Part shown: piece by piece, positions 154 through 56,800 of the stretch | How positions within the stretch are numbered: the stretch's first letter is position 1 | Layout: the number at the start of each line of letters is the position of its first letter | Assembly (NCBI GenBank): GCA_964247055.1 | Contig: OZ176054.1 | Location: 4,898,001 to 4,962,000 of the forward strand | Reading direction: 5' to 3' | From: Paragordius varius | Lineage: Eukaryota > Animalia > Nematomorpha | Length of the DNA stretch: 64,000 bases | The notes under the pieces: model-generated | The model's input: only the letters and a program-made list of their open reading frames with translations | Databases searched by the model: none | What the model was told of the DNA's origin: nothing | Position numbers and translations under genes: made by a program

Positions 154-3100
154 CGTCAACATTTTTTCATACTGTAAGCTAGCAGCCATACTGTTTTCAC
201 TGTAATCGAGGCCCTCTTTCCACCCATGCATAAGGAATGTCAGCCTAAGTTGTCGCGCTGTAAAACTTTGCAGTGCTTGACGTATAGTAATAAAATTCTT
301 CAATGATTTCGACATTTTACAGCCACTGATAGTCAAATGACCCGAATGAATAAAGTATGAAACCCAATCATTGCTTTCGTAATAAGCCTGGGGAGAAAGT
401 AAATAACATACATTAGAGCACAGCGGTCCGTATACAAATAATTTGATTTTTAATAACTTTAAGCTTGTTTATTAACGTTCCAATAAAACAATATAGTAAT
501 TCATGAATTATTGTAAATTTTAAAGATTCAAATTAAAAACCTTTTTGTAAATGTTAATAATCCAAAATTTTTGTAAACAATAGCTCTTTATATGCCAACA
601 TATGATATATGTGTAAATATATATATGTATAGCCTTTTTATGAAATTATTTTAAGCTATAGAGCCCAATTTTAAAAAAGAAAAGCTTTATTTTAAATATA
701 CGACAATAAAAAAAGTAAGGAAATAACTTCCGTTTGTGCAATTTCATTATCATGATGAGGAAACTTTAAATCAACTCCACCAGCATGAATATCAAGGTAT
801 GATCCACAAATAGCGGTAGCCATTACTGAACACTCAATATGCCACCCAGGTCGACCCTTATATATAATTTAAAAATTTTTTTGGTAATACAGTGAATAAA
901 TAACGCCCTAAAAATAAGTTTTTGTATACTTTGCGCATATAAAATACTTGGCTTAAGCAAATCATCATTTTCGATAAAGAACTAGTTTTTAAGTTATATT
1001 CATGCAAACTTACTCTATTTAAAAATTCGCATAGTGACCCAAATATATAAAAAAATTCCAACATCTATAAAATATATTAAATAAATCGAGAAATAATCAT
1101 ATCTCAATTAAATTTGATGCGTATAATGAGTCATGAACTATTCAAAATCGGGCTTATTATTTTTGGGATGGGGGTTTACTGTATTTAAATTGTTTCTATA
1201 AGCATTTTCAAATATTATAATTTTTATGAAAAAAAAACATTTAATCATTCATTACATTTCCCCAGGGTGATTCCCAATACGGTTCTTCAGGTTTAGAGCT
1301 TTTCCATAAAGCGAAGTCGTTAATACTTCGTTTTTCCGATGTGTGTTCTTCCGTAACACTCAGTTCACCTGTAATATTAATTGCATATAAAATTTTAAAT
1401 GTTATCAATGATAAATCAATTAAATAGAGTATTGATGTTATGTAATAAATATGGTGAGAAATAGTTATCAAGAAAGATGCATCTGAAAATTAACCCTGTG
1501 ATTTAACAATCGTCAATCGCTTTGTAAAGGATCATAATACTTTTTAATCTGCAAGGCTAGGGGCCATTTTATCATAAGGAAAATATATTTAAGTCAATTA
1601 CTAAATAAAATTATTAACTACTTGAATTCATATGGGAAAAGTAATTGACATTACAATTAAAAAATATAATTATAAATACTAAATTGGTGAATACGGCTAA
1701 CCTTTATTCAAATGATACTTAACGGGAAAAAATCTATAATAATAATAATAATACTCAATTAAAATATCAAATACTGAGATTAATAAAAATTATCAATTTG
1801 ATTAAAGTTTTTTAGCTAATTTGATTTGAATTCATTTTATAAAAAGTTAAGGGTATACCTTCTCCTTCATCTATAGCTTTCTGATCTCCATACGCTTCAG
1901 GCAATAGCTTAGCATAATGGTGATTTGGATTTTGCGAAAATTTAGCTGTATCGAAATAGACTGAGCCCGAACGTGCAACATATCTAATGAGAAAAAAGGT
2001 TTATTTAAATAATTTTTCGGAAAAAGTTTCTTATTTTTATACACCAGCTTCTGACACCACATAATAACCCTAAAAAACTCTTTTCTATAATAGCAGGCCT
2101 AATAATGAAGATTATACACTTTTAGGTTAGGAAATATATTAGTATTGTGCATAGATTTGGGCCTTTGTCATAATGAGCCAAAAATGGAAAATAATTATTA
2201 ATATTTATGCTTTTCTCATGATATAAAATTTAAATAAATATAAGTTTTATGGGATATTAATTGAAATTTTTAATTAATAATTAAATTTGATATATTGTTA
2301 AATTGAAAAAATAAGTTAGAAAAAAAAGTTGTTTTAAATAATAAATAATGTTAAAAGACAAAAATATAATAAAAAAAGAAAATCAGGTAAAAACAATAAA
2401 ATAGAAAAACACATGCAAAAATTATGGTTATGGCCACACTTATAAAGTTTACTGACCGACTTGAAGTGTTTAAGAACAGTCTTAAAATGTTTAAAGACCA
2501 ACTTAAAGTATTCAGAAACATTCTTGAAGCACAAATGATATATTATAGATTAATAGTAATTTTTTTATAAATATATAATTTACAAAAAAGTGCAATTATC
2601 AAGATGTATAAATAATGAGTCATGTAATACCTCATTTCTAACCAGTATAAGGGTTTACATTATCACAATATTAAAAAAAATAAATTACGCATATTTATTT
2701 TCAATGATTTTTTGGATGAAAGCTATAATTTCCGGAATGTATTCTGTTACACGCGTCAGTACCGATGGTGGCATTATCTAAAGATTGGTAAAAATGTTAA
2801 ATATTTAAGTGGTATAAAAGAGTAAAAAAATTTAAAGGGAGATGTAAAAATACATTTTAAGAAATAATTAAATTAAAACATCCGTTAATATATGTACATT
2901 AAAATTGTTTTTTTGACCAAAAAAACAAAATTAAACTAATATAATTACTTTTGCGAAACTGGATCAATTAAATGATAAGGAAAATAGTAAAATATAATGT
3001 ATAATACATAGGGTCGAAATAGTAAAACCATAACAAGCTTTATTACTTTTTTAAAAATGTTTGAAATAATATCCAAAACTTGTGTTTTTAGGCAAAAATT

Positions 3101-6100
3101 AATGATTAGTGGCAAATAAAAAGAGTTGGAAACCAGTTATACTTATAACCTTAGCAAAATTATGCGAAAAACAAAAAAATATAAGTATTTAAACATAATC
3201 ATATTACTAACATTTAAGCTTTTCATGTCTTCGTGAAATTCATCCTCCCAAAAACGGGGAAGTTCCAAAAAAATCGTATTTTCTTTAATGGGGTATCTGT
3301 GTTGCGAATCCAACCAGTCGGCCATAACATCCGATATTTGGTTTAAAAATTTCTGCAATTAAAAATTGATAAAAATTTATTATTTAACGCAACGTATGTA
3401 TATACATTGTTTTAGGCTGGATATTATTATATATATATATATATATATATATAGTAAGCCTGATTGTTAAAACCAATTATTTAATAGTTTATTATAGTTT
3501 TTAACGGATATTTGCACAAATAAATCATTACAGTCATAAAACCTCCGAATAAAAATAATGTTTCAATGTTCATATATTTAAGGGTAAAAAAGTAATATTT
3601 TCGTTAAAACAGAGGTAAAAGATTAATATCCACGATAAAGCTATTCATAAAATAGAAAAACTGATAAAAATGAAATGTTAATGAATCATATATCATTCGA
3701 TGTTTGGAAGCTTAAGGTTAAAGAATATTAACACGATATATGCGGTTAAAAAACTAAAAAAAAGTTATTTTGATTTATCTGCTATCAGCCAAAGTTAAAA
3801 AATCACATTATCGCATATTAGGTCAAATAAAATAAATGCAATGATGAAATCGTGTCAAGGAAATTTAATTTATGCTAATATAGCATAAGGATAATTTTAA
3901 ACGGAAAATATTATCAACAAAGTGTTATACTTTTTCGGAGGGTCCAGAGAGGTTTTCAAAAATATTAGCTAAATATCGCATTTTGGCGTTAATTTGAATC
4001 ATAAAAACTTGTTGATCGGTAAAAGAATTCGATTTTTATTAAAATAATTATATATTAACTTTTTATATAGAGTTACTTATTCGCCGTCAGACAAAATTTA
4101 GTCCTTATATAAAAAAGAAATTTTGATAATTTGAACCAAAGCGGAAGCTGCGTTTTTACAAAACATCCAATAAATATTATTATCCATACAAGGATCAGAA
4201 AAAAAGATTTATCAACTCAGTATTTAATTTGGGGAACTTGTATGCCCAAAGCCGGTATTAAAACAAAATGGCGCCAAAAATATAATCGAGATTTTCGGGT
4301 AAAAAAAATTCCCTAAAAAAATCTGAGATGAGAAATCTTTTTTCTGCATCTAATAGTATGAAAAATGTATTTATATTATTTATGTTGGATGTTTTGTAAA
4401 AATTATACACAATTTCCCCTTTAATGCAAATTATCGTTTTTATAAAAGTAAATTTTTTTGAAAATGACAAATTGGGTAATTTCTAACTATAGATTTAATA
4501 TTTGATTGTTTTATTAAAAATTAAAATATTTAACCGCATTTTAATAAGATTTTATGATTCAAATTTAACGAAAAAGTGCGATTTTTTAGCTAATATTTTT
4601 GAAAATCTCTATGGGACCCTCCATAAAGATGTGAAATCTTTGTTGGTATTATTTTGCGTTTACAGTTTATGCTATATTTGAACAAAAATTTAGTTGACGC
4701 GTTTTCATCTAATGTATTTAATTTTATTTGAACTACTATGCGAAACAATGTAATTTTTTAATTTTGGCCAAAAACAGAAAAATTAAAATAAATTTTTCTA
4801 GAATTTTAACCGCATATATCGTTTCGATATTCTTAATTCTAGAGCTTTTTTTAGTTATCGAATGATATATAATTCATTAACCTTTATTTTTAATTCCCAT
4901 TTTTGCCGCACAGTGTTATAGAGCAGGGGCAACCAACACAAATGGCTTTGTGGGCCAAAACTATTTTAATAAATTTAAACATAAGACTATAAATGTAAAT
5001 CGAAAACAATGTTTTCACGTTCGTTGTCGATTCAAGACTTTATCAGAAAATTAGCTTAAGAAATATAGATTTTACCAAAAATTTGTGAAAATAATTTGAT
5101 AAATTTTGGAGTTCCAAGGGACACCTTGGTAAAGTTGATTTTATTTCTGAAATGTCCACCACAGATACAATTTATAGAGTTAAAAGGTTAATAGAAAAGC
5201 ATATAAATAGGAAAAGGGACATGGATTTTAAATCGATATTGAAAAAGCGCTAGGATACCACGAGTCTATATGGCGGAGTTTAGCAAGTTACATAGGAACC
5301 TAAAAAACGTACGGCTTACCAAAGCTAAAATACATCGGGGAATGTAAGATCCAAATGGAATAAACCAAAGCATCTTACAGAGATCAGCAATATGTCCTTT
5401 GCTATTTATCATATGAATGGACGAAATTTCAAAAGAAGTAAACCAATAAGATAGATATGTTCGCTTTATGCAGATGACCTAATCGTGCTGCCAGAGAAGT
5501 AGCAAGAATTGATAAACAAATGATATTTTGAGTTTAAAGTAAATAAGATAAGGACCTCATAATTATTGGTGAGAAAAAAACGAGAAATGGAAGAAGAAGG
5601 TTGGTTATTAAAAAATCAATAGGAATTAAAATATTAAGGAGCGATTTAGCGGCAGATAATTCTTTAACGCATGATATAAATTTAAAAATTCGAAATAGTT
5701 GGGCAAATTATAAAAAGATCTCAAGTTTGTGCGATAAATATATTGATCTTAAAGTCAAGGGTAAGATTTACAGTGCTGTTGTACAGTCAACAATAATGTA
5801 TAACTTATAGACATGGGCAATAAAAGAATTCAGAAGATAAGCACTGTGAAATCACTGAAATCAGAATGCTTAGATTGATGTGCGGTGAAGTAAGGGAAAA
5901 AAAGAAATTATATTAGAGGAGTACAGAAATCAAACCGATAACACAAAAGATTATGTTAAATCGTCTTAGATGGTTTGAACTGTAAGAGGAGATTCTAACT
6001 ACAGTAAAAAGAATGATGAATATATTGCGAAAGGTAAGAGGCGAAGAGGACGTCCTAAAACGCGATGGATAGATACGGTTAAGAGAGATGTGGCAAAACT

Positions 6101-6903
6101 GACTTTAAACGTGAAAACGCCATATATAGGGTTCTAAAGCGGAATGGTTTACAAAATTGACCGTTTTAGGGAATGTTTTTAATAGCGATATTTTTACAAA
6201 CGCTATGTTACTAAGAGCTGTATTAAATGTCCGATGAATGTGGATCAAGATGTAAACCATTTTTTCTTTATCAATTTCAGTCATATCTTGGGGTTTAGGG
6301 TTAGCATCTACCATGCGTTGCAAACGTTTTATTCCATCATTAACCTTATTGACTGTAACATTTTCCAATGTTTTCGCGTCCGGATTGGTTTCTTTCTTTA
6401 TTTTTACCGAAAAATGCTACAAATTAATCGAACCTAGTGTACTTGCAATGCTTCTATACAATCTTTTGAAACCTGTTCTAACGTATGATTTTCGCTAACA
6501 TATCGTTTAAAACGATAATTTTGTCTGGCTCTTTTTATTATCTAAATATAATTAGCAAATACTTTATCATCAATATCTGTGATATTCATAACTGCCAAAA
6601 CGTCATACTTAAAATATTTTTCCAAGACACGACGTATAATATCAAATGATATATAAGATCTACATTTTGATATTATTAAAACCTCGCATGACCCATGTGA
6701 GAAGCATCATAAACAGTGGGTCCACAAGTGTACCACAATACTTTATTCCCATTTCTCGGAATAAATATATCCTAAAAATAGTGATGAACTAAACTTTATT
6801 TCGAGTTAACGAATTATATAGTTGTAATTTTTTGTTATTTTCTATAGGAGCGTTCCAAATAAAACCCTTTTTTTCTTCTAAAAAATTAGTTAAAATTACT
6901 CAT
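154..6903 (-). CDS. CARS1: Cytosolic cysteinyl-tRNA synthetase, 5' part (12 exons, 454 codons visible; 3' end beyond the left edge)
   Basis: Hand-spliced GT-AG exons: 6900-6903, 6795-6877, 6683-6771, 6563-6659, 6443-6541, 6258-6416, 3212-3352, 2689-2777, 1859-1983, 1256-1368, 728-856, 154-387. All phases are compatible (total 1362 nt). The protein has [33 protein letters not shown] (HIGH-type motif), [39 protein letters not shown] and KMSKS, colinear with animal CARS1 as I recall it. Confidence 0.97.
2440..2535. repeat. Degenerate ~20-bp tandem units related to the subterminal repeats of the 15940-16581 MITE
   Basis: Units like ttgaagtgtttaagaacagtc / aaatgtttaaagaccaactt ending in cttgaagcacaaat, resembling 16490-16581. 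Lies in a CARS1 intron. Confidence 0.5.
3656..4895. mobile_element. ~1.25 kb degenerate palindromic (fold-back/MITE-like) element in CARS1 intron 6
   Basis: The left half matches the reverse complement of the right half along its length, e.g. ggagggtccagagaggttttcaaaaatattagctaaa (~3937) vs tttagctaatatttttgaaaatctctatgggaccctcc (~4585), and tttttacaaaacatccaa (~4153) vs ttggatgttttgtaaaaa (~4385). Centre ~4230-4315. No ORF. Ends approximate. Confidence 0.75.
4924..4965. mobile_element. Isolated hAT terminus
   Basis: ttatagag|CAGGGGCAACCAACACAAA, closely resembling ttatagag|CAGGGGTGTCCAACACAAA at 26442. Confidence 0.55.
5080..6150 (+). mobile_element. Decayed RTE-clade non-LTR retrotransposon (RT and C-terminal region)
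   Basis: Broken frames with DIEKA, YADD (tatgcagatgac ~5467), [17 protein letters not shown] (ORF 5601-5810), NRLRWF and [19 protein letters not shown]. Confidence 0.8.
6417..6442 (-). other. 26-nt GT-AG intron 5 of CARS1
   Basis: gtacactaggttcgattaatttgtag. Removal gives EALQ|HFSVK. Retention reads an in-frame TAG. Confidence 0.9.
6542..6562 (-). other. 21-nt GT-AG intron 4 of CARS1
   Basis: gtatttgctaattatatttag. Removal restores DIDDK|IIKRARQ. Retention reads an in-frame TAG. Confidence 0.95.
6660..6682 (-). other. 23-nt GT-AG intron 3 of CARS1
   Basis: gttttaataatatcaaaatgtag. Removal restores HMGHAR|SYISFD. Confidence 0.95.
6772..6794 (-). other. 23-nt GT-AG intron 2 of CARS1
   Basis: gtttagttcatcactatttttag. 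Removal gives LYNSLTRNK|DIFIP, colinear with CARS1. Confidence 0.93.
6878..6899 (-). other. 22-nt GT-AG intron 1 of CARS1
   Basis: gtaattttaactaattttttag. Removal joins ATG A|AA to give [12 protein letters not shown]. Retention gives an early TAA. Least homology-constrained of the five. Confidence 0.75.
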
Positions 6904-8248
6904 GTTTTTAAGTTTTGACAGATGAGAAATGCGTAAAACGGGTTTTGACATATGTTAAAAAACACATTTTACTAAATTTTATAATTGGACAAATTAAGAT
7001 TATTCCGGTAATTTATGGTTGAAAGAAATATCAAAGGTAATGTTTTCTTAATTGTAATCAGTTTAATTTTTTAGGGTGGTAATTTGAGTATAAAACATTC
7101 TTGCTTAAATATGTATTTTATCATTATTAATCTAATGGTGGTTTTGGGCATCATAAACAAGTTAATATCATATTTTAAGTATTGCCCCATATCGTACAAT
7201 CTCAAAATATGCGTAAATCATGCTAATAAAGGCGATATAAGGCTTTATCCTAAAAAATATTTATAAAATTTTTTAAGTGCAAAACAATATTTTTGAAATT
7301 TATATTTCTAATAATGAATTCGACTTTTCTAAGAGCAGGTGTGATTTAAGTTCAAAGCAAATAATCCGATATTTTGTAATAAAATCATATATTTTGACAC
7401 CAAATACAAAAAAATTGATATTCCTAAAATTTAATTTATACTTAAATTTTTGTGAAGCGAATATAAACTATTTGGAGTATGGTGGTAACGGTAAAAACCA
7501 CTTAAAGACATTATAAATATACTTATCTTAAATTCCATCATCTCAAATTTTATATTTTCAAAATGTGTTTAATTTCAAATTTAAATGATTGTTTGTTAAA
7601 AACAGAATATTATTGAACATAAATCTGTTTACAAACAACACTTCAGGACTTTTTAATATTTTTGTCCGCTATATTGGGGTAGTTCATATCAGAGTCAATC
7701 TTGTAAATAAACTGCTGTTTTAAAAGTTATTTTAGTTAAAATTTAATCATCAAACGTTGTTATCCTTTATTAGATAAAAACACAATTTTTGAACTTCCAT
7801 ACTCTATTGAGCTAAATTTAAACCACCATTGAAATAAAAAGCTGATATCAAAAAAGGATCAAACTATTGGTGATTATGACCTGAAATCTGACTAAATATT
7901 ATTTCTAACCATAATATACATTTATTCCCTATAGAAAAAATGGCGGCTAAAACGTTTGACATGTTCATTTTTTACTATTTTACATTTGTTAAAAAAATTT
8001 ATATGAAGCATTCGCCTTAAGCTAAAAGATATTTTTAAATTCAGTGCAATTAAAAAACTTTTTAAAATAATTTTAAAATGCTCTGCGATATAATACTACC
8101 CAAAAAGTGATGAAATGGTAATCAAAAATCTGAGGAGATAAAAATATTTAACATCTTTAAATTATAAGTGTTTTTCTAATATCTTAGAGTGTTTTATCCT
8201 TCGCATCCAGCTTCAAAATACGTTAAAACTCGATGCAGCAATTTTTAA

Positions 8249-9920: not shown

Positions 9921-12900
9921 TTAAATGCTGATTTTTTGTGGAATGATTACACATATATTTCCAATTATGTTTTCCGGCATGTTTGGTATTTTGCTAAACT
10001 TTTGATTCTCAGGATCTAAACATTCACAACTATCTAATTCTAGGTCATTTTGGCTATTAAATCCTCCCATTATATAGATACGTTTATCTACACGTATTTT
10101 GAAATTATATTACCATTAGGAAGATCACATTTACCATAGCTAAAAAATTAAAAGCTAAAATAAAATCAAACCCAAAAACACACAACCAAAACGTAAACGT
10201 GGAATTTTCAAAGATGTTATAAGCTCCCATGTTCTAGTAGCTTGATTTAAATATTCAATAGAGTTTAAACTAAGAATTTTTTTGTCATTGACCGCAGCAC
10301 CCCCAATGACATATAATTTACCATTGGCACTAATCATTGCGTGATAGGAGCGTGCAAAAAGGAGTTTGGGCCTATGAAACCATCTGTATTATAATTTATT
10401 GTATGGATTAAATTTTATATGAAAATGGTAAAGCATCAAAAAAAATTCATGTACGATAACCACTTCTCCCCACATGATTCCCTTTCATATTGGGTAAAAT
10501 AAAAAACCCCATAAAAAACCAGATTTTTTGAGTGATCGGAGTAAACCTATTTTTCCAAAAACCTGGGGTAAATAATGAAGACACAAACTTTAAATAATCA
10601 TAATACCCAAATACACCAACTGGATTAAACTTTTCAACTATATTTTATTCATTAGTATTTATAACGAAATAATCAAGCGTCTTAATATTTATCTTTTATA
10701 CAAAATATATATGATGATAAAATGTATGATCTAAAAATAGTTGCAATGTATTCAGTTTCAGTCTCATTCACTTATTTTAGCATGAAAGCGCTATAAGATT
10801 TTTTTTAATTAAGTCAAAAAGTTTCTTAATATTTACAAAAAATAACGCTATTTTTACGATTCAACTACAGCAACAATTTATAAGACTTTAGAAACTTGGA
10901 GGTTCATTATAAAATAAAAAATCATCTTTTACAGGTAAAAACTACTGCTCTTTCATACTTTTTGTGCGTCATATCAAACACTTCAACGTTTTTTGTCATT
11001 TTAGCCCTATCGTCCTGACTTGATTTGACTATTCCCCCTGAAATCCATATTTGATTTTCATGAACACATGCTGCTAAAGCCATCGTACAGTCTGGTATAG
11101 ATTCTATGCATTTCCATTCATTTTTCAACAAATCATAGCTTTCAACCAAATCTAGTTGACTTTAAATTTTACAAAAATTAAAAATGACACTCTAGAATCA
11201 TAAAGAAATGTATAGGAAAACAAACCCGCAGCTTTAATTAAAGTTATTATAAAAGATATTAAAATGGGTGATTATATTAGGCTAACCCCTAGAGTTAATT
11301 TTCAGTTTAATTTCAAATTTTCAGTTTAATTTTCATAATTACATTAAATTTAATTTAAATTCGTATAACCAACTGCATTTATACCAAAATTGCAAAGTTG
11401 GATATATATACGAAATCGATATGTGAAAACCCCAAGTCAAATAGTTGTGTCGTACTGATGAGTGCTAACAAGCACGAAAGTAGTCTGCGATTACTATTGA
11501 CGAAGGGTTTCATATATCGTTTATAATTTCTATTTATAATTTCATTTAATTTATTTAATTATCCTTTGTCGTTATATTACGGATTTTAACAACTGTTATA
11601 ACTTATTTACGTTTAATTTATACGATACGTCTGTAATAATAAGCGAATTTTGTAACTTTGCTATATATATATATATAGGAATATCAACCAACAATCCGTA
11701 GATCTTAAAACATACTTGTTACAGAGATTTGTAAGGATTGTTGGCTGATCACTACTTCTAAACCCTATTTTGTATAAATTATATTCTTAATAATTCCCAC
11801 TCATGTAAGATTTCAAAAAAAACAGTATAAATTTTTTATACACTCATAAAGATGACAAAAAAATGCCAAAATAAAAAACAATATTTTTGGTTTTATTTGA
11901 TGAATGTTAAGATTTTAATAGTGAGTTTAGGTAGTAAATAATTAATAAAAATTATTTTAATATAGTTTCAATAATTTTTTTGTCTTTAATGTTTAATAAA
12001 AGAAAAACGCCATCTTTTGAGAAATTTTAAAGAGACCTTAACTATTTGATATTAGGCTATTTATATATTTAAAATATATCCTAAAATGATAATAAACCAT
12101 CATTATTTTTTTATTTATCATTAATTTTCACTTTTTGCCCAATTTCAATTTTCTCTCAATATTTTAAAAACTAGGTTGTTAACAAATAAAAATTTTCTGG
12201 CAAATGATTACGCTGGTCATAAGCTATCTCATGAAAAAAAAATTTTTGTTAAAAATCTTTTTGCACACAGTGTATATATATATATATATATACTAGTCGG
12301 ACTTCTGGGGGGAGCTATTTGAAATAAGGGACAATAAAATGATCCACATATGTGGATTATTTCTAAACATTATTTAAATATGATATGGGAATTTTAAAAC
12401 GGTGCATTCATACTAATATTTAATTTTAACGGTCTCATACCTTGGGCAAAAAATAAATAAAAAAATTATTTTTGTGGACTTTGTTTTTTGAACAAGGTGG
12501 CATTTTACGGGGGGAGCGGGTAAAAAGAGGGCTTAAATCAAAAATGTGACCCGACTATGTTCGGCGCAATCGAAAATAAGTAAACAAAAATTATATTTGA
12601 AATTGAATGATCCAACACGTTCTACGGAAAATTGTCTCAAAGACACGATTTCTGAGGACTTCTGTTTTCAAAAAAAATCCGTTTTTCACACGGGGTGGGC
12701 CCGAATCGGGGGCCTATTTCAAAAAACGGGCGAAGCTATTGTCGGGGCATTCATTAATGATTATATTTTTTCGATGTTTGGATTTGAATTGGTCTGCCAT
12801 TTTTCCTCTACCAGATCACAAAACCAGCATTTTCCATTTTTAAAAATATATAGATTTAATGATTGATGCTTGAAAAAACAAATATAACTTATATTCAGAA

Positions 12901-15707
12901 TCAGCTCCCCCAAGCACATATATTTTCCCATTATGAACGAGCATTTGATGGTCGTATCGTTCTTTCGTCATATTTTGCAATTTAATCCATTTTCTATGTT
13001 GGAATTTATGCAATTCATTTGAGGTTTTGTTGTTCGGGAGAGTGCCTCCTGAAATAAAATAAAATTTCTGGTGATATACAGTAAAAATAGAAATTATAAG
13101 GACAAAACATAATATAAAGACATTTTTTTTCAAAAAACAACTTTACTTTTTTTAACCATAATTTTTCCCTTATAAACTATTTATAATTGTTAAATATATA
13201 ATTGATTGCGTTACAATATAAATTATCATTTCATAGTTTACAGTTTCGATGAGTTATATTAAAAAAAATTAATATATAAAAGGTATGGTTGTCTTTTAGA
13301 AAAAAATATTTTTCTCTATATTTTGTTTTGTTCGTATTTTAATTTTACTGTATTTTTACAGTATTCACTTCTATATTTAACATAAATATAAGTTTTTAAT
13401 TATGCTGGATATATATCCGTTTGGATTTACAAGCATAAGCTCAGCGAAACTTAGATCAAATTGAACATATATTTTAAACGTTTCGCTCAAATTATATGCA
13501 TTACATTCGTTAAGGTGAACTCAATAAATATTTAATAAAATGGCCATACCAGAAATATATATAATATTGTCAATTACACAGGCTGCATGGTGGCTAAGTG
13601 GATACGGTAATTCAAATCCGAATTTTGACCAAACACTGGATGCAGGATTAAATAAAAAACATTTCTTTCGCAAATCACTTTCGATCAAGGTATCGCCCGA
13701 TGTCCCACCAATACTTAGGATGTATTCTTTAGCCTAAAATACAATATATATTCTTAGCATAGTTATTATTTATTATCGCCTTTAGAAAATTGTGATTAAA
13801 TAAATTACGTTAAACAAGCTTGAACTTTTTTTCATGCATATAAGACATTGTTTGGATATCTCAGCATGTGGCGATTTTCGAGGAGGTGGTATTTCAAAAA
13901 ATACTTTATCCAATTGACCGTTTTCTTTACATGTTTGATACCTAATTGAATTATATAGTATCAACCAATTTACAGCTCCATAATTGGTTTTATATTTACA
14001 ATTTATAATTCCAATAAATTTGCTATATTTAAACAAATGAGATTTAAAGTTTTATTGCTTATTTTTCAAGCTATACTAGTTGAAAAAATTGTGTCTTGTC
14101 AAAACATATTTCAATATATTATTTTATATTTAGTAAACGAATTATTTGTATCTAGCCAAAAATTTCAAATACCTTTTATTATGACTACTTCTTTAAATCA
14201 GGTAATACAAATCGCTTTGTGGGCCGCATTTTCGCTTCATCTGACGGGTCGCATTCGTCATATATATTTAGGCATTAATCAATATTTTATTAAATTTCAA
14301 ACATACATAAACTGTACAGTAAGGGAACTTAATTGAAAAAAATTGGTAAAACTTTGTATTTGAGAACCCGCGGGTTTTGGAGGGTCGAATGTTACACGCC
14401 TCTGCTTTAAACTATGCATAAATTCAAAAGTAAAATATTTTGATTCAATATTTGTTTATGTAAAAAACTTAAAGGGATTGGAGTACCAAAATGCCTTGTG
14501 AAAATGATGTGCACAAAATGGACTCAATCCCAAATATTCTTTCCCATCCTCTAATGCCAATAGCAAATCCGGAACATCAATATAAACCATACGGACACGT
14601 TCAAATATCTCATTACTGAATTTCATTCGTCCTTCTTTGTCAGCATGAATCCATCGAATAGCTGCTCTTAGAACATCTACCTATTGAATAAAATATTTTA
14701 GATTTTTCAAATTTGGACATTTACTTCATAGTATTATACAGCACGGCCTGATTCAAACAATAACTTCTAACAGGTGTAAAAATATTATTTACTAACCAAA
14801 AATTAAAAAACCTAGGCCAAATTGGTCCGGATTTTAAAATAGGAAAGTTTGAACCAGAATCAATTATATATAATCAATTAATTGGCTTTACGGTAAAATA
14901 TCATCAGTTTAATTTAAAGTGTATGTTATGGATTTTACTTAACACTTTGATACAAATTAAAGTATCTAAATACCCTAGACTATATTTAAGTGATATTTTA
15001 ACAAACTAGTGAAAGACGGTCTTAATTTAAAATTCAACTTCTATCCTAATAAAAAATATACAAATAAGTAATATCAAAATAAAATTTAGCTTTGAAAAAA
15101 CGTCCCATATTAAACTACTTCGACGCAATTTTACAACTTTTTTGCAAACTATCGTGTTTATTTAATTTTTAATAAATTAAAGCTATTTTGTTTAAATCAC
15201 ATCAAACATTGATAGAAAGAGAAAAAGTAGTTTATGTGTTATTTTAAAATTAAACTAATGCACACATGTAATGTAGACTAAATTTTAACTTTGGGTATTA
15301 TTTTAAAATAAGTTATATTAAGTATATTTGAATATTTATTTTATATTTCCGTTCATTAATGTTATATAAATGCAAACTTTTGTAATGGTTACAATTTATT
15401 CCATATTTTTTGAAATATTTAATTTTAAACAGGCTTGGGGTATCTAACGACCCCAATTTGTATCGAAGGATTGAAATAAATGTGTTGTATCCAAGAGTTA
15501 AAAGAAATTAATAAATACCTCTTTGTCAACAGATAAATAATCATTTTCCAATAATTTTTTTATGTTGGATGCGTCAAGCTCAATGAAAGTTTTACTACAT
15601 ACCAAATCAATAAATTTTTCCGTTAAAATTCTTTGATATTTATCATCAAGAACTGTGAGAGCCGGTACTTTTTTTAACTCGTCCAATGCTTTATATATAT
15701 CATCCAT
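9921..15707 (-). CDS. Kelch-like protein (BACK domain + six Kelch repeats, 479 aa), apparently intact; no BTB exon found
   Basis: Exons 15519-15707, 14487-14680, 13809-13941, 13550-13733, 12889-13048, 10959-11159, 10172-10383, 9921-10087. All GT-AG and phase-compatible, 1440 nt ending in TAA. BACK-like TFIELD..LLENDYLSV..EVDVLRAAIRWIH and VRMV, followed by six GG Kelch motifs (ILSIGG, IYISGG, IYVLGG, IWISGG, LYVIGG, IYIMGG). Confidence 0.88.
11417..11519 (+). ncRNA. Candidate type I hammerhead ribozyme, antisense in Kelch intron 5
   Basis: CTGATGA (11455-61), stem II GTGCT/AGCAC with loop AACA, GAAA (11476-79), stem III GTAGTC/GATTAC, U-A cleavage site (11495-96), imperfect stem I. An outer helix pairs CGATATGTGAAAACCC with GGGTTTCATATATCG. 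Confidence 0.72.
11679..12272. mobile_element. Right half of a TA-flanked Tc1/mariner-like fold-back MITE (unit 1 only)
   Basis: Ends TTTTTGCACACAGTG|TATA. Matches the centre and right arm of 36873-38043. Confidence 0.75.
12335..12850. repeat. Dispersed repeat, family unknown; second copy at 53088-53590
   Basis: aaaatgatccacatatg...ttcacacggggtgggcccgaatcg...ttttccat matches 53088-53590 at a non-syntenic position. ORFs 12546-12866 and 12607-12843 lie in it and have no recognisable motif. Confidence 0.8.
14943..15497. mobile_element. TTAA-flanked piggyBac-like MITE in Kelch intron 1 (shared by both units)
   Basis: TTAA|CACTTTGATACAA ... TTGTATCCAAGAG|TTAA. Ends 21 nt from the exon 1 donor. 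Confidence 0.75.
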
Positions 15708-15939
15708 TGGTGTTTATATAGCATAAATTAGAACACAACTACACATGATTAAAAAATTAATATTAAAAAAATTTTATGATTTAAACAGGACCATTTTGCT
15801 TGGATAGCAGCGAAATTCTTCAGTTACCCTGTAATGATATTAAATTTGAATAATACCGGGCTCATTATCCGAATAAAAAAAAGAGAATTTTGTTTTGTAA
15901 TTTAATTATTAAAACATATATCGGAGCTAATAATATACC

Positions 15940-16581
15940 ATTTGCACTTCAAGAGTGTCCTTTGACTTCAAGTTGGTCCTTGAACAGTTCAAGTTGGTCC
16001 TTAAACAGTTCAAGTTGGTCCTTAAACATTTCAAGCTGGTCTTAAAATTTTGAATTTTGATTTAACCATAATTTTTGCATTATTTTTTATTTTATTATTT
16101 ATTAACCTAATTTTCTTTATTTATTATGTATTTATTCATTTAAAAAATAAAAATTTATATTGAACCACTTTTTTGTTTCAAACTATTTTTTTTCTATTAA
16201 ATAAAACTATTAACTTTTAAATGATTATAATAAAAAATTTTAATTAATAACCCAGAAAACTTATATTTTTTCATTTCGTAACTTATAAATATCGAATATT
16301 ATTTTAAGAAATTAATAAAGATATACAGTTTCTCAAAGAAAAAAAGTTGATATCGATTTAAAATTTATGTTAAATAATAGAAAATAGGTTAAAAACAATC
16401 AAATAGATATATTATTTACGATTTGATTGATATAAGTTAAAAACAAAACAAAAAGTCAAAGGACAAAAAACTGTTTAAGGACAACTTGAAATGTTCAAGG
16501 ACCAACTTGAACTGTTCAAGGACCAACTTGAAATGTTTAAGGACCAACTTGAAGTGTCAAGGACACTCTTGAAGTGCAAAT
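15940..16581. mobile_element. MITE with ~30-bp TIRs and ~20-bp subterminal tandem repeats (unit 1 only)
   Basis: ATTTGCACTTCAAGAGTGTCCTT ... AAGGACACTCTTGAAGTGCAAAT, with inverted arrays of ttcaagttggtccttaaaca. Empty site at ~52350. Confidence 0.85.
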
Positions 16582-53817: not shown

Positions 53818-56800
53818 GATAATTAGGTCCAATGTATTCACATATATCAAGGTGAAATAATAATATTCACAAGTGGTGGTGAGGTTATAATAATGTAAAA
53901 ATAGCACACAGATAAGTTAATAGGTTAATATAATAATATATAACGAATGTTGTTTGTGCGGGTAATCTAATCGTGTAATAGATTTATTCTGTCATTTACC
54001 AGTCTAACATCACTACCCCCTCCTAATGAAAGCGGGCAGGTTTCTGACGACTTCTTGTCGGGTACCGTCGTTCCTGTGTTTTAGCGGGGGAGTAGGTTGT
54101 CGCAGATTCCTGGGTATTATCATTATTTGGACTTTCGGCTGTCGGAGTAATTGGCTCGATTTCGTCCCTTGAATTGATCGTGTTTGGTTGCGTTTCGGCC
54201 CTTGTTCCATCATTCGTGGCAGTGGTTACATCCTTCTCACTTGTGTTGCTTGTAGTGGTAGGTTGTGGTTGTGGCTGGTGTACTATTTGGTCAGCGTGTT
54301 TCCTCACAACTTTGTCTCAATCCTTGTCCCACACCTTGTATGAAAGCAGCCCTGTACGGTCCGTAATCTCTCCGGCGCGCCACCCTGGACTTAACTCATT
54401 TTTAATCATTATCTGATCATTAATGGCAAACTGCCGTCGGGGGGCCGGTGCATTTAGCAATTTCGCCCTACTATTTAACCAGGTTAAGGGGGTATGGGGA
54501 GTACGCTTGAACATTAACTGGGCCGGGGTTTCTTTCGTTGTTGAGTGTATAGAATTACTATACGCCCATAGGCTAGTGTTAAACGCTTCGTGGGTGGATA
54601 TCGCATTATTTTTTTATTCTTTTGTATTTATTTTTTATTGTACCTACTAACCTTTCTACCATCATTACTCTTAGGATGGTAGGGGTTAACCTTAATATGT
54701 TTCACCCCTAACGTACTTAAGGTTGACGTAAAGTACTCTTTACTAAAATACGAAGCGTTATCGCTAACGATCTCTCTTGCAAAGCCAAACCTTGCAAACG
54801 TTTTTTCTACTTTGTGGATTATATTCGCTGCGGTTACTTTTTTCAAAATAAATCCTTCTGCCCATTTCGAGGCACTACCAATTATCAACAACCAATAAAA
54901 CCCGTCTACCGGTCCGGCTATATCAATATGCAAACGCTCCCACACTGCAACATTATGATCCCACTGATACGTGGAATTCTGAGTAACATTCGGCCTACTA
55001 CGCTGGCACGATTCGCATTGACTACTGGCTTTTACCAGGTCATTTTCTAATTCTGGCCAATAACACGTAAATCTGGCCATTGCTTTCATGGTCTCTACGT
55101 TGTTATGACCGCTGTGTAGGTAACTCACCACCTCTTTTTGGAGGGCCTTCGGAATTACAATCCGATCATTTAAACTTAATAAGCCATATTGATATGCCAA
55201 CTCGTCTTTACGGTTTACAAACTTTACTGATTCTGGAGAACTCCAGTCATGGTTGTTTAACGCTTTAATTACTTTTTGTAATAATGGATCTATTGCGGTT
55301 TCTTTTCGAATTTCATTTCTGCTTAACCGCACGTTATGACAATTCAAAAATCTCAAATATCTGGTAACCGCATAATCTTCATCATAGGCAACGATCTCGT
55401 CAATCGGCCATCTCGATAAATAATCAGCTCTATTTTGAGCCCCTTTTTGATGACTTATTTCAAAGTCGTATTCATTTATCATATTAATCCACCTTAGTAT
55501 TTTAGCATTATGTATCTCTTTTAAATTTCGATCTCTATTTATTAACTTTACTAAGGGTAAATGGTCAGTTAATATTGTAAATTTTCTACCATATATGAAG
55601 CTATGAAACTTTCGTAACGCAAATAATATTGCTTTTAATTCCTTCTCTATAGTGGAATAATTCCTTTCAGCGTTGATACACTTTTGTGAGGCATACGCTA
55701 TCGGTATCCTTTCACTATTAACTTCATGACTTAAAATACATCCGAATCCTAAATCTGCATCAGTTTCTATTATCAATTTCCTATTCGGATTATATGGTGT
55801 TAAAAACACTTTTTCGCTTAACAAATTCTTAGCTGCTAACCAGCTTTTCTCATGTTTCTCGGTCCAACACCAACTCGTATTTTTACTAGTAAATTCATGT
55901 AAGGGACCGACTATCATTTGTAATTTTGGTATAAAGCGTTCATGAAACGTCAAAAAACCTAAAAAATTACGTAATGACTGTTTATCTACCGGCCTCTTTA
56001 GTTTCTTAATTGTTTTGCTTTCACATGGGCTTATACCCTTTTCGATATTACAAACCCTAAATAGTTTACTGATTCTGCGCCTATCATTATTTTATCTTGT
56101 CTTAATTTAAATCCGGCCTTATCAAGACGACTTAATACGTTGTTTAAATTGTTAATGTGCTCATTTTCCGTCCTACCAGTCACTAGGACGTCATCTAAAT
56201 AAACGCAAGTTCCCGGAGTTTCAGCCACACTTGTTCCATCACTTGGAAGATGATAGGTGCCGGGCCAGTCCAAACGGCATGCGTTTGTATCTAAAAAAAC
56301 CTTTATGTGTTGATATTATTAACAATTCCTGACACTCCTCTGCCATTGGCATTTGGAGGTAAGCATCTTTTAAATCAATTTTTGGGAATGTGATACCTTC
56401 ACCTATTTTCGACACCAACTCATCAAACGTATGGGAGTCATTTTGCAACCATTTATTAATCGTTACCCGAAAATCACTACATATTCTTAATTCGCCATTC
56501 GGTTTAAGTACATTAACCGTAGGCGTGGCCCATGTCCCAGGGTTAATGTTAGGATCAACCGGTTCTAAGATGCCTAACTTTTCTAGCATCAGCTCTTTCT
56601 CCACCTTTCTTAATGGAAAAGGCACCCTGCGACATGGCCATACTTTCCGTATCGCATTCGCTGCAATGCGAATTTTTACAGGGTCCTTATAACACCCTAA
56701 CTTATTTTCGAATAAGTTTCAAATCTCATTCAATTTAAGATAATTAACTTTAACCTGTGGCATCTCAATCTGTAATTTCGCCATCCAGTCCAGTCCACAG

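Follow-up and report, generated by a model that had tools for sequence, protein, structure and literature searches.

Five predicted introns of 21-26 nucleotides alongside kilobase-sized introns in an animal-type cysteinyl-tRNA synthetase gene of Paragordius varius

The cytoplasmic cysteinyl-tRNA synthetase gene (CARS1) carried by a 64,000-nucleotide stretch of Paragordius varius DNA (contig OZ176054.1, positions 4,898,001 to 4,962,000; called here the window) contains five consecutive segments of 21-26 nt which are, with high probability, ancient U2-type GT-AG introns of a functional gene, compressed to a size close to the smallest known for any spliceosome. From the sequence, we infer that the five segments are removed from the RNA. 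This intron reading is very likely for micro-introns 2-5 and likely for micro-intron 1. The novelty of the arrangement lies in the apparent coexistence of 21-26-nt introns and kilobase-sized, repeat-filled introns within one slowly evolving housekeeping gene, where they are matched one-to-one with vertebrate introns. By contrast, in both accepted animal lineages with introns below 30 nt (as published by September 2026), nearly all introns are tiny.

In the region of the five segments, a coding sequence can be read solely on the minus strand. The frame that opens with the ATG at 6903 is broken five times in 487 nt and each of these breaks is bridged by the removal of a segment running from GT to TAG (Table 1). 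The original prediction had claimed that the N-terminus of the enzyme, including the HMGH motif, can be read only by removing segments of 22, 23, 23, 21 and 26 nt, each opening with GT and closing with TAG. These lengths and ends are exact, and the conserved protein indeed emerges solely upon removal of the segments. The remaining gene was rebuilt by tblastn with two full-length homologues and by reading of the exon boundaries. Once the five micro-introns and six further introns (GT..AG, 340-2905 nt) are removed, a stop-free open reading frame of 454 codons is obtained, the product of which contains both HMGH and KMSKS, the latter in exon 12. The joint presence of tiny introns and of introns of up to 2.9 kb, also predicted, is found here within a single gene (21-26 nt and 2905 nt). 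The gene model stops at the window start, the C-terminal third of CARS1 lying beyond the window.

Table 1. Features of the CARS1 gene and other annotated features of the window, with the lengths of the introns found at the same alignment column and codon phase in the CARS genes of Silurus asotus (catfish), Intoshia linei and Macrostomum lignano
Feature	Position	Strand	Length, phase	Catfish (nt)	Intoshia (nt)	Macrostomum (nt)	Remarks and basis
Exon 1, coding part (ATG + 1 nt)	6900..6903	-					Sole ATG joining the exon-2 frame once intron 1 is removed
Micro-intron 1	6878..6899	-	22 nt, phase 1				GTAATT..TTTTAG, has CTAAT; frame restoration; weakest of the five
Exon 2	6795..6877	-					Aligns with N-termini of animal CARS1 proteins
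Micro-intron 2	6772..6794	-	23 nt, phase 0	1102	161		Shared column and phase
Exon 3	6683..6771	-					HIGH-type motif HMGH
Micro-intron 3	6660..6682	-	23 nt, phase 2	426	2126		Shared column and phase
Exon 4	6563..6659	-					Homologue alignment
Micro-intron 4	6542..6562	-	21 nt, phase 0	692	996	1266	Has CTAAT; shared column and phase
Exon 5	6443..6541	-					Homologue alignment
Micro-intron 5	6417..6442	-	26 nt, phase 0	680	375		Has TTAAT; shared column and phase
Exon 6	6258..6416	-	53 aa				Variable insertion region of CARS1; end at the position of the catfish 582-nt intron
Intron 6	3353..6257	-	2905 nt	582			GT..CAG; mainly multi-copy repeats
Exon 7	3352-3212	-					tblastn, boundary reading
Intron 7			434 nt	183			Shared column and phase
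Exon 8	2777-2689	-					tblastn, boundary reading
Intron 8			705 nt	75			Shared column and phase
Exon 9	1983-1859	-					tblastn, boundary reading
Intron 9			490 nt	120			Shared column and phase
Exon 10	1368-1256	-					tblastn, boundary reading
Intron 10			399 nt	785			Shared column and phase
Exon 11	856-728	-					tblastn, boundary reading
Intron 11			340 nt	112			Shared column and phase
Exon 12	387-154	-					tblastn, boundary reading
BTB/BACK-Kelch gene	9924-15713	-					Long introns; BACK matches 15501-15713, Kelch motifs 13524-13733
LTR-retrotransposon pol	54628-56625	-					RT RNase H, integrase zinc-binding and core domains

The 454-aa product was aligned with pig CARS1 in a single blastp HSP (57.8% identity over 446 aa), its identity to vertebrates being 58-60%, and matches to Pfam tRNA-synt_1e (PF01406) were obtained on three of exons 7-12. 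Nine homologues, ranging from mammal to alga, were aligned with the product in MAFFT, and junctions 2-5 are gap-free. They read RNK/DIF (phase 0), HA(R)/SYI (phase 2), DDK/IIK (phase 0) and ALQ/HFS (phase 0), where the slash marks the junction, exactly as had been claimed. A maximum-likelihood tree placed CARS1 inside the animal clade (support 99/98) on a short branch, outside the pair formed by Macrostomum and Hymenolepis (100/99) and away from Intoshia, with the reservation that this is a single-gene tree that gives no resolution within animals. On account of the pig alignment, the gap-free junctions, the placement within the animal clade and the short branch, the predicted product is an animal-type, slowly evolving cytoplasmic class I cysteinyl-tRNA synthetase.

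The segments behave as introns in composition and in their effect on the frame. Their GC content is 0.23, compared with 0.36 in the exons and 0.21-0.28 in the long introns. Retention of any single micro-intron leads to a stop within 2-7 codons. The lengths of four of the five are not divisible by three; micro-intron 4, of 21 nt, ends with an in-frame TAG and its retention places a stop at codon 98. At the boundary of intron 1 (ATGA/../AAGAA), a TGA located upstream in the exon-2 frame blocks unspliced read-in, so that intron 1 is needed for an in-frame ATG to be reached. With the dinucleotide frequencies of the window itself, the joint frequency of having GT and AG wherever the five segments require them is about 1e-14. 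Because of this value, and because catfish and Intoshia have introns at four of the positions, a chance origin of GT and AG at the five sites is excluded.

To compare intron positions, the exact exon-intron structures of the CARS genes of Silurus asotus, Intoshia linei and Macrostomum lignano were derived from their own proteins and then mapped on a common alignment. The catfish gene came from a profile search in which only vertebrates figured among the best 120 matches. Each of window introns 2-11 coincides with a catfish intron in both alignment column and codon phase, and the positions of introns 2-5 and 7-11 are also common to Intoshia (Table 1). In a stretch that aligns poorly, a phase-1 intron of both catfish (391 nt) and Macrostomum (87 nt) is situated about 2 aa away from intron 1, likewise of phase 1, whose homology to it is probable, if inexact. 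The sole catfish intron absent from the span covered by the window CARS1 is a phase-1 intron in exon 12, near ..LQSFT/ARQLRL... As read from these alignments, the retention of ancestral introns in the window CARS1 is unusually complete. Since random frameshifting insertions would not recreate the ancestral bilaterian intron map, the five segments are best taken as introns and not as damage. Colinearity, shared positions and phases, GT-AG ends, base composition and stops upon retention all agree with the claim that these are spliceosomal-type introns in an animal-type CARS1. The comparison further offers a dated trajectory of intron shrinkage, from about 3.3 kb of catfish intron to 115 nt here. 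The P0026 and Oopsacas CARS loci are intron-less, and a search for relatives of the 5' region with exon 6 as query returned no candidate.

DNA from a second source bears on the segments directly. Sequencing runs X1-X5 contain 0.48-0.79 of the sampled words, intron-rich sequence included, and are on that account DNA. Contigs of run X4, which carries a second organism label (organism-B), span 6243-6759 and 6776-7000; they contain the whole of micro-introns 1, 3, 4 and 5, and micro-intron 2 is represented by 19 of its 23 nt, positions 6772-6775 falling between the contigs. The presence of the micro-introns in this second source excludes that they are an assembly artefact. Three differences from the window are listed, at 6663, 6810 and 3218. 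The first is a C>T change inside micro-intron 3, and the two others, both exonic, are synonymous third-position changes, which weakly supports purifying selection on the coding sequence. It should be noted that the organism-B contig on 6243-6759 counts 531 letters compared to 517 in the window; the 14 extra letters would represent a variant in intron length should they fall within a micro-intron, or a frameshift of that copy should they fall within an exon.

The RNA-labelled runs X6-X10, which bear the same species label, contain a 0.00 share of the sampled words, and no CARS1 transcript was found in X6-X8 at 85% likeness over positions 1001-7000. The only match in X6-X8 at this likeness is a stretch of 30 nt at 6561-6590, corresponding to the NITDIDDK codons, in contigs of depth 20-65. 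It was rejected as a CARS1 transcript, as it belongs to another cysteinyl-tRNA synthetase with PHIGHAKTY and DDKVIKRCSENNV in the flanks; by its sequence, this transcript is of the bacterial or mitochondrial type (CARS2 or symbiont).

The splice signals of the two intron size classes were compared. GT-AG ends are found in all five micro-introns and all six long introns. The micro-introns start with GTA (three) or GTT (two), and the long introns have 5' sites of the GTT or GTA kind that are equally weak, with CAG, TAG or AAG at their 3' ends. A CTAAT or TTAAT motif had been claimed in three of the micro-introns and is indeed present there, as CTAAT in micro-introns 1 and 4 and as TTAAT in micro-intron 5, the distance of its second A being 7-10 nt to the 3' end and 10-18 nt to the 5' end. 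The branch-motif candidates of micro-introns 2 and 3 are looser, and five introns are too few for a branch-site consensus. These sequences give no hint that two types of splice signal exist. The "unusual dual intron-recognition mode" put forward in the original prediction is accordingly unsupported, the 5' sites of short and long introns being alike (GTA/GTT), and clustered, 5'-biased microintrons beside kilobase-sized introns are already known in flatworms (PMC6530080). An Rfam scan of the window returned no RNA genes, hence no spliceosomal RNA among them.

We propose that the micro-introns are removed co-transcriptionally via intron definition. In this mechanism, U1 would recognize a minimal GT(A/T) 5' site and the pairing partner of U2 would be an A-rich, branch-like motif, CTAAT or TTAAT in three of the five introns, situated 7-10 nt upstream of the invariant TAG, a polypyrimidine tract being essentially absent save for a short T run. 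Transcripts that keep any micro-intron would meet a stop in 2-7 codons and be discarded. The downstream CARS1 introns would have become long through filling with multi-copy repeats, so that a single spliceosome would act on introns that were all minimal, some of them being inflated by repeat insertion. The 5' cluster of micro-introns may have been spared by selection or by an insertion bias, a suggestion that comes from one gene. The contig depths of organism-B are consistent with this scheme: they amount to 14-495 in most long-intron bins, compared to 2-6 for single-copy DNA, and reach 46-495 over much of intron 6. Because the long introns are largely multi-copy DNA, the two size classes probably reflect repeat insertion or expansion into minimal introns and not two splicing machineries. 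A high-copy repeat, with up to 495x organism-B contig depth, occurs within intron 6 (3353-6257), particularly at 5601-6200. Translated on the plus strand, the sequence at about 5600-6100 resembles the tail of a non-LTR reverse transcriptase, and a 69-aa ORF is found there without a Pfam match.

According to Hadjez et al. (Mol Biol Evol 2026, PMC13644364), animal introns below 30 nt are confined to the myxobolid myxozoans and Dicyema japonicum, and further lineages with such introns are predicted. In line with the claim that they are far below the animal norm, the 21-26-nt introns are under published animal sizes save for these two lineages (PMC13644364). In myxobolids, the introns have a median of 22-27 nt and reduced GTa..AG signals (PMC13644364). 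The CARS1 micro-introns resemble those of D. japonicum and myxobolids (PMC13644364; Lu et al. 2019, PMC6736024) as GT-AG introns below 30 nt at conserved ancestral positions, with little more than GTa/t left of the 5' site, A residues located a few nucleotides before the 3' AG and no proper polypyrimidine tract, in a parasite-type, AT-rich genome. However, short introns are the rule in those lineages (the myxobolid median given above; a mean of 38 nt in Dicyema), whereas they do not dominate (median below 30 nt) within the window CARS1, where six of the 11 introns measure 340-2905 nt and are repeat-filled. Moreover, unlike in dicyemids and myxobolids, the window CARS1 protein evolves slowly; the 3' end is TAG in five of five micro-introns here and merely AG there; and the GC content is 27% here compared to 36.7% in Dicyema. 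A dicyemid or myxobolid origin of the window was rejected on the long introns, the short protein branch and this difference in GC content.

A parallel in architecture is provided by flatworms. In Opisthorchis felineus and other trematodes and cestodes, intron lengths display a microintron peak at 37 nt and a second peak at 90 nt, and gene predictors run with default settings overlook these microintrons (Ershov et al. 2019, PMC6530080). As in flatworms (PMC6530080), the short introns of CARS1 are adjacent and 5'-biased, the first five introns being micro and the next six long, and a kilobase-sized class stands alongside in a repeat-rich genome. Unlike the flatworm introns, they measure 21-26 nt and not around the 37-nt peak, and CARS1 falls outside the flatworm pair. 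The CARS1 architecture is a more extreme case of the known flatworm pattern, outside flatworms, and not a new mode.

Similar sizes are also encountered in protists. Introns of 20-30 nt in Paramecium and 15-16 nt in Stentor are cited in PMC13644364 and PMC6530080. The micro-introns share with ciliate and nucleomorph introns their size range, the GTA..TAG ends and the premature stops upon retention, but those protists have uniformly tiny introns, whereas the gene described here is of animal type, uses standard stop codons and contains long introns too. The CARS gene of Intoshia linei likewise keeps the ancestral intron positions, and it mixes very short introns of 34-51 nt with long ones of as much as 2126 nt. 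Its size polarity is opposite, with the long introns in the 5' part (161-2126 nt), and none is below 34 nt; eight of the 15 later introns are of 34-51 nt, with introns of 224-842 nt interspersed. The published hairworm assembly of Gordionus montsenyensis (26.9% GC, 64% repeats, 71.6% BUSCO completeness) resembles the window in base composition and repeat load only. Neither the Gordionus montsenyensis paper nor the comparative hairworm preprint mentions introns, and we found no report in the literature of introns below 30 nt in Nematomorpha.

Other explanations of the five segments have to be weighed against this background. It is very improbable that CARS1 is a decaying pseudogene in which the segments are frameshifting insertions. 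The failure to see a CARS1 transcript in the RNA runs and the unexplained 14-letter length difference in the organism-B contig would both fit such decay, but insertions would not land on ancestral positions and phases four or five times running, nor would they all begin with GT and finish with TAG; furthermore, the 454 codons are free of stops and frameshifts with the catalytic motifs intact, both exonic organism-B differences are synonymous and the tree branch is short. Hardly credible is a removal at the DNA level, by programmed elimination as in ciliates, or by an RNA pathway independent of the spliceosome, for example an IRE1-type excision of 26 nt. The smallest sequences eliminated in ciliates and the unconventional intron of XBP1 are of a size similar to 21-26 nt, which speaks for such a pathway. 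Against it, the boundaries are GT..AG and not TA..TA, the positions are homologous to spliceosomal introns of other animals, the segments are kept in DNA contigs from two sources and the downstream CARS1 introns are canonical.

That the segments are real introns which are poorly or regulatedly spliced, retention and decay acting as a throttle on expression, so that they would not be neutral relics, appears unlikely. An early stop upon every retention would suit this function, as would the median splicing efficiency of about 25% of very short microsporidian introns, as cited in PMC13644364, and three RNA contig sets of transcriptome size lack the CARS1 transcript. Nevertheless, CARS1 is essential and apparently single-copy here, ciliates, dicyemids and myxobolids remove such introns efficiently enough for whole proteomes (PMC13644364), and a transcript missing from small contig sets is weak evidence. 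We thus retain the reading of the five segments as compressed ancestral spliceosomal introns. A broader proposal, possible though somewhat doubtful, is that they would mark a third independent animal lineage with introns below 30 nt, in which about 23 nt would be the ground state, kept in promoter-proximal introns, while the distal ones would have been inflated by transposable elements, a single spliceosome working with minimal GTw..TAG signals. If this third-lineage proposal were true, standard annotation and BUSCO-type tests would break such genes, and part of the low completeness and "gene loss" in AT-rich, repeat-rich parasite genomes, for instance that of Gordionus montsenyensis, could be an annotation artefact.

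Two consequences follow from the gene itself. Introns at the physical minimum and ordinary introns, handled by what would be one spliceosome, provide a natural comparison within a single gene. In addition, aligners and gene finders with a minimum intron length above about 20 nt truncate or miss such genes, with effects on estimates of completeness and gene loss in this genome and those of its relatives.

Several other features of the window were recorded. Intron 8 of CARS1 contains, at 2438-2507, a minisatellite with a 21-nt period and the unit ACTTAAAATGTTTAAAGACCA. Look-alike arrays, whose translations read KDQLELFKDQLELF and LVLKHFKLVLEQFK, are located upstream of the Kelch gene, at about 15950-16060 and 16440-16580, and the 21-nt-period minisatellite is probably part of a dispersed element. 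The 5' exons of this BTB-Kelch gene, sought for micro-introns, were not found upstream of 15713. The LTR-retrotransposon pol forms a GC-richer island, with a GC content of 0.38-0.39 compared to 0.27 elsewhere.
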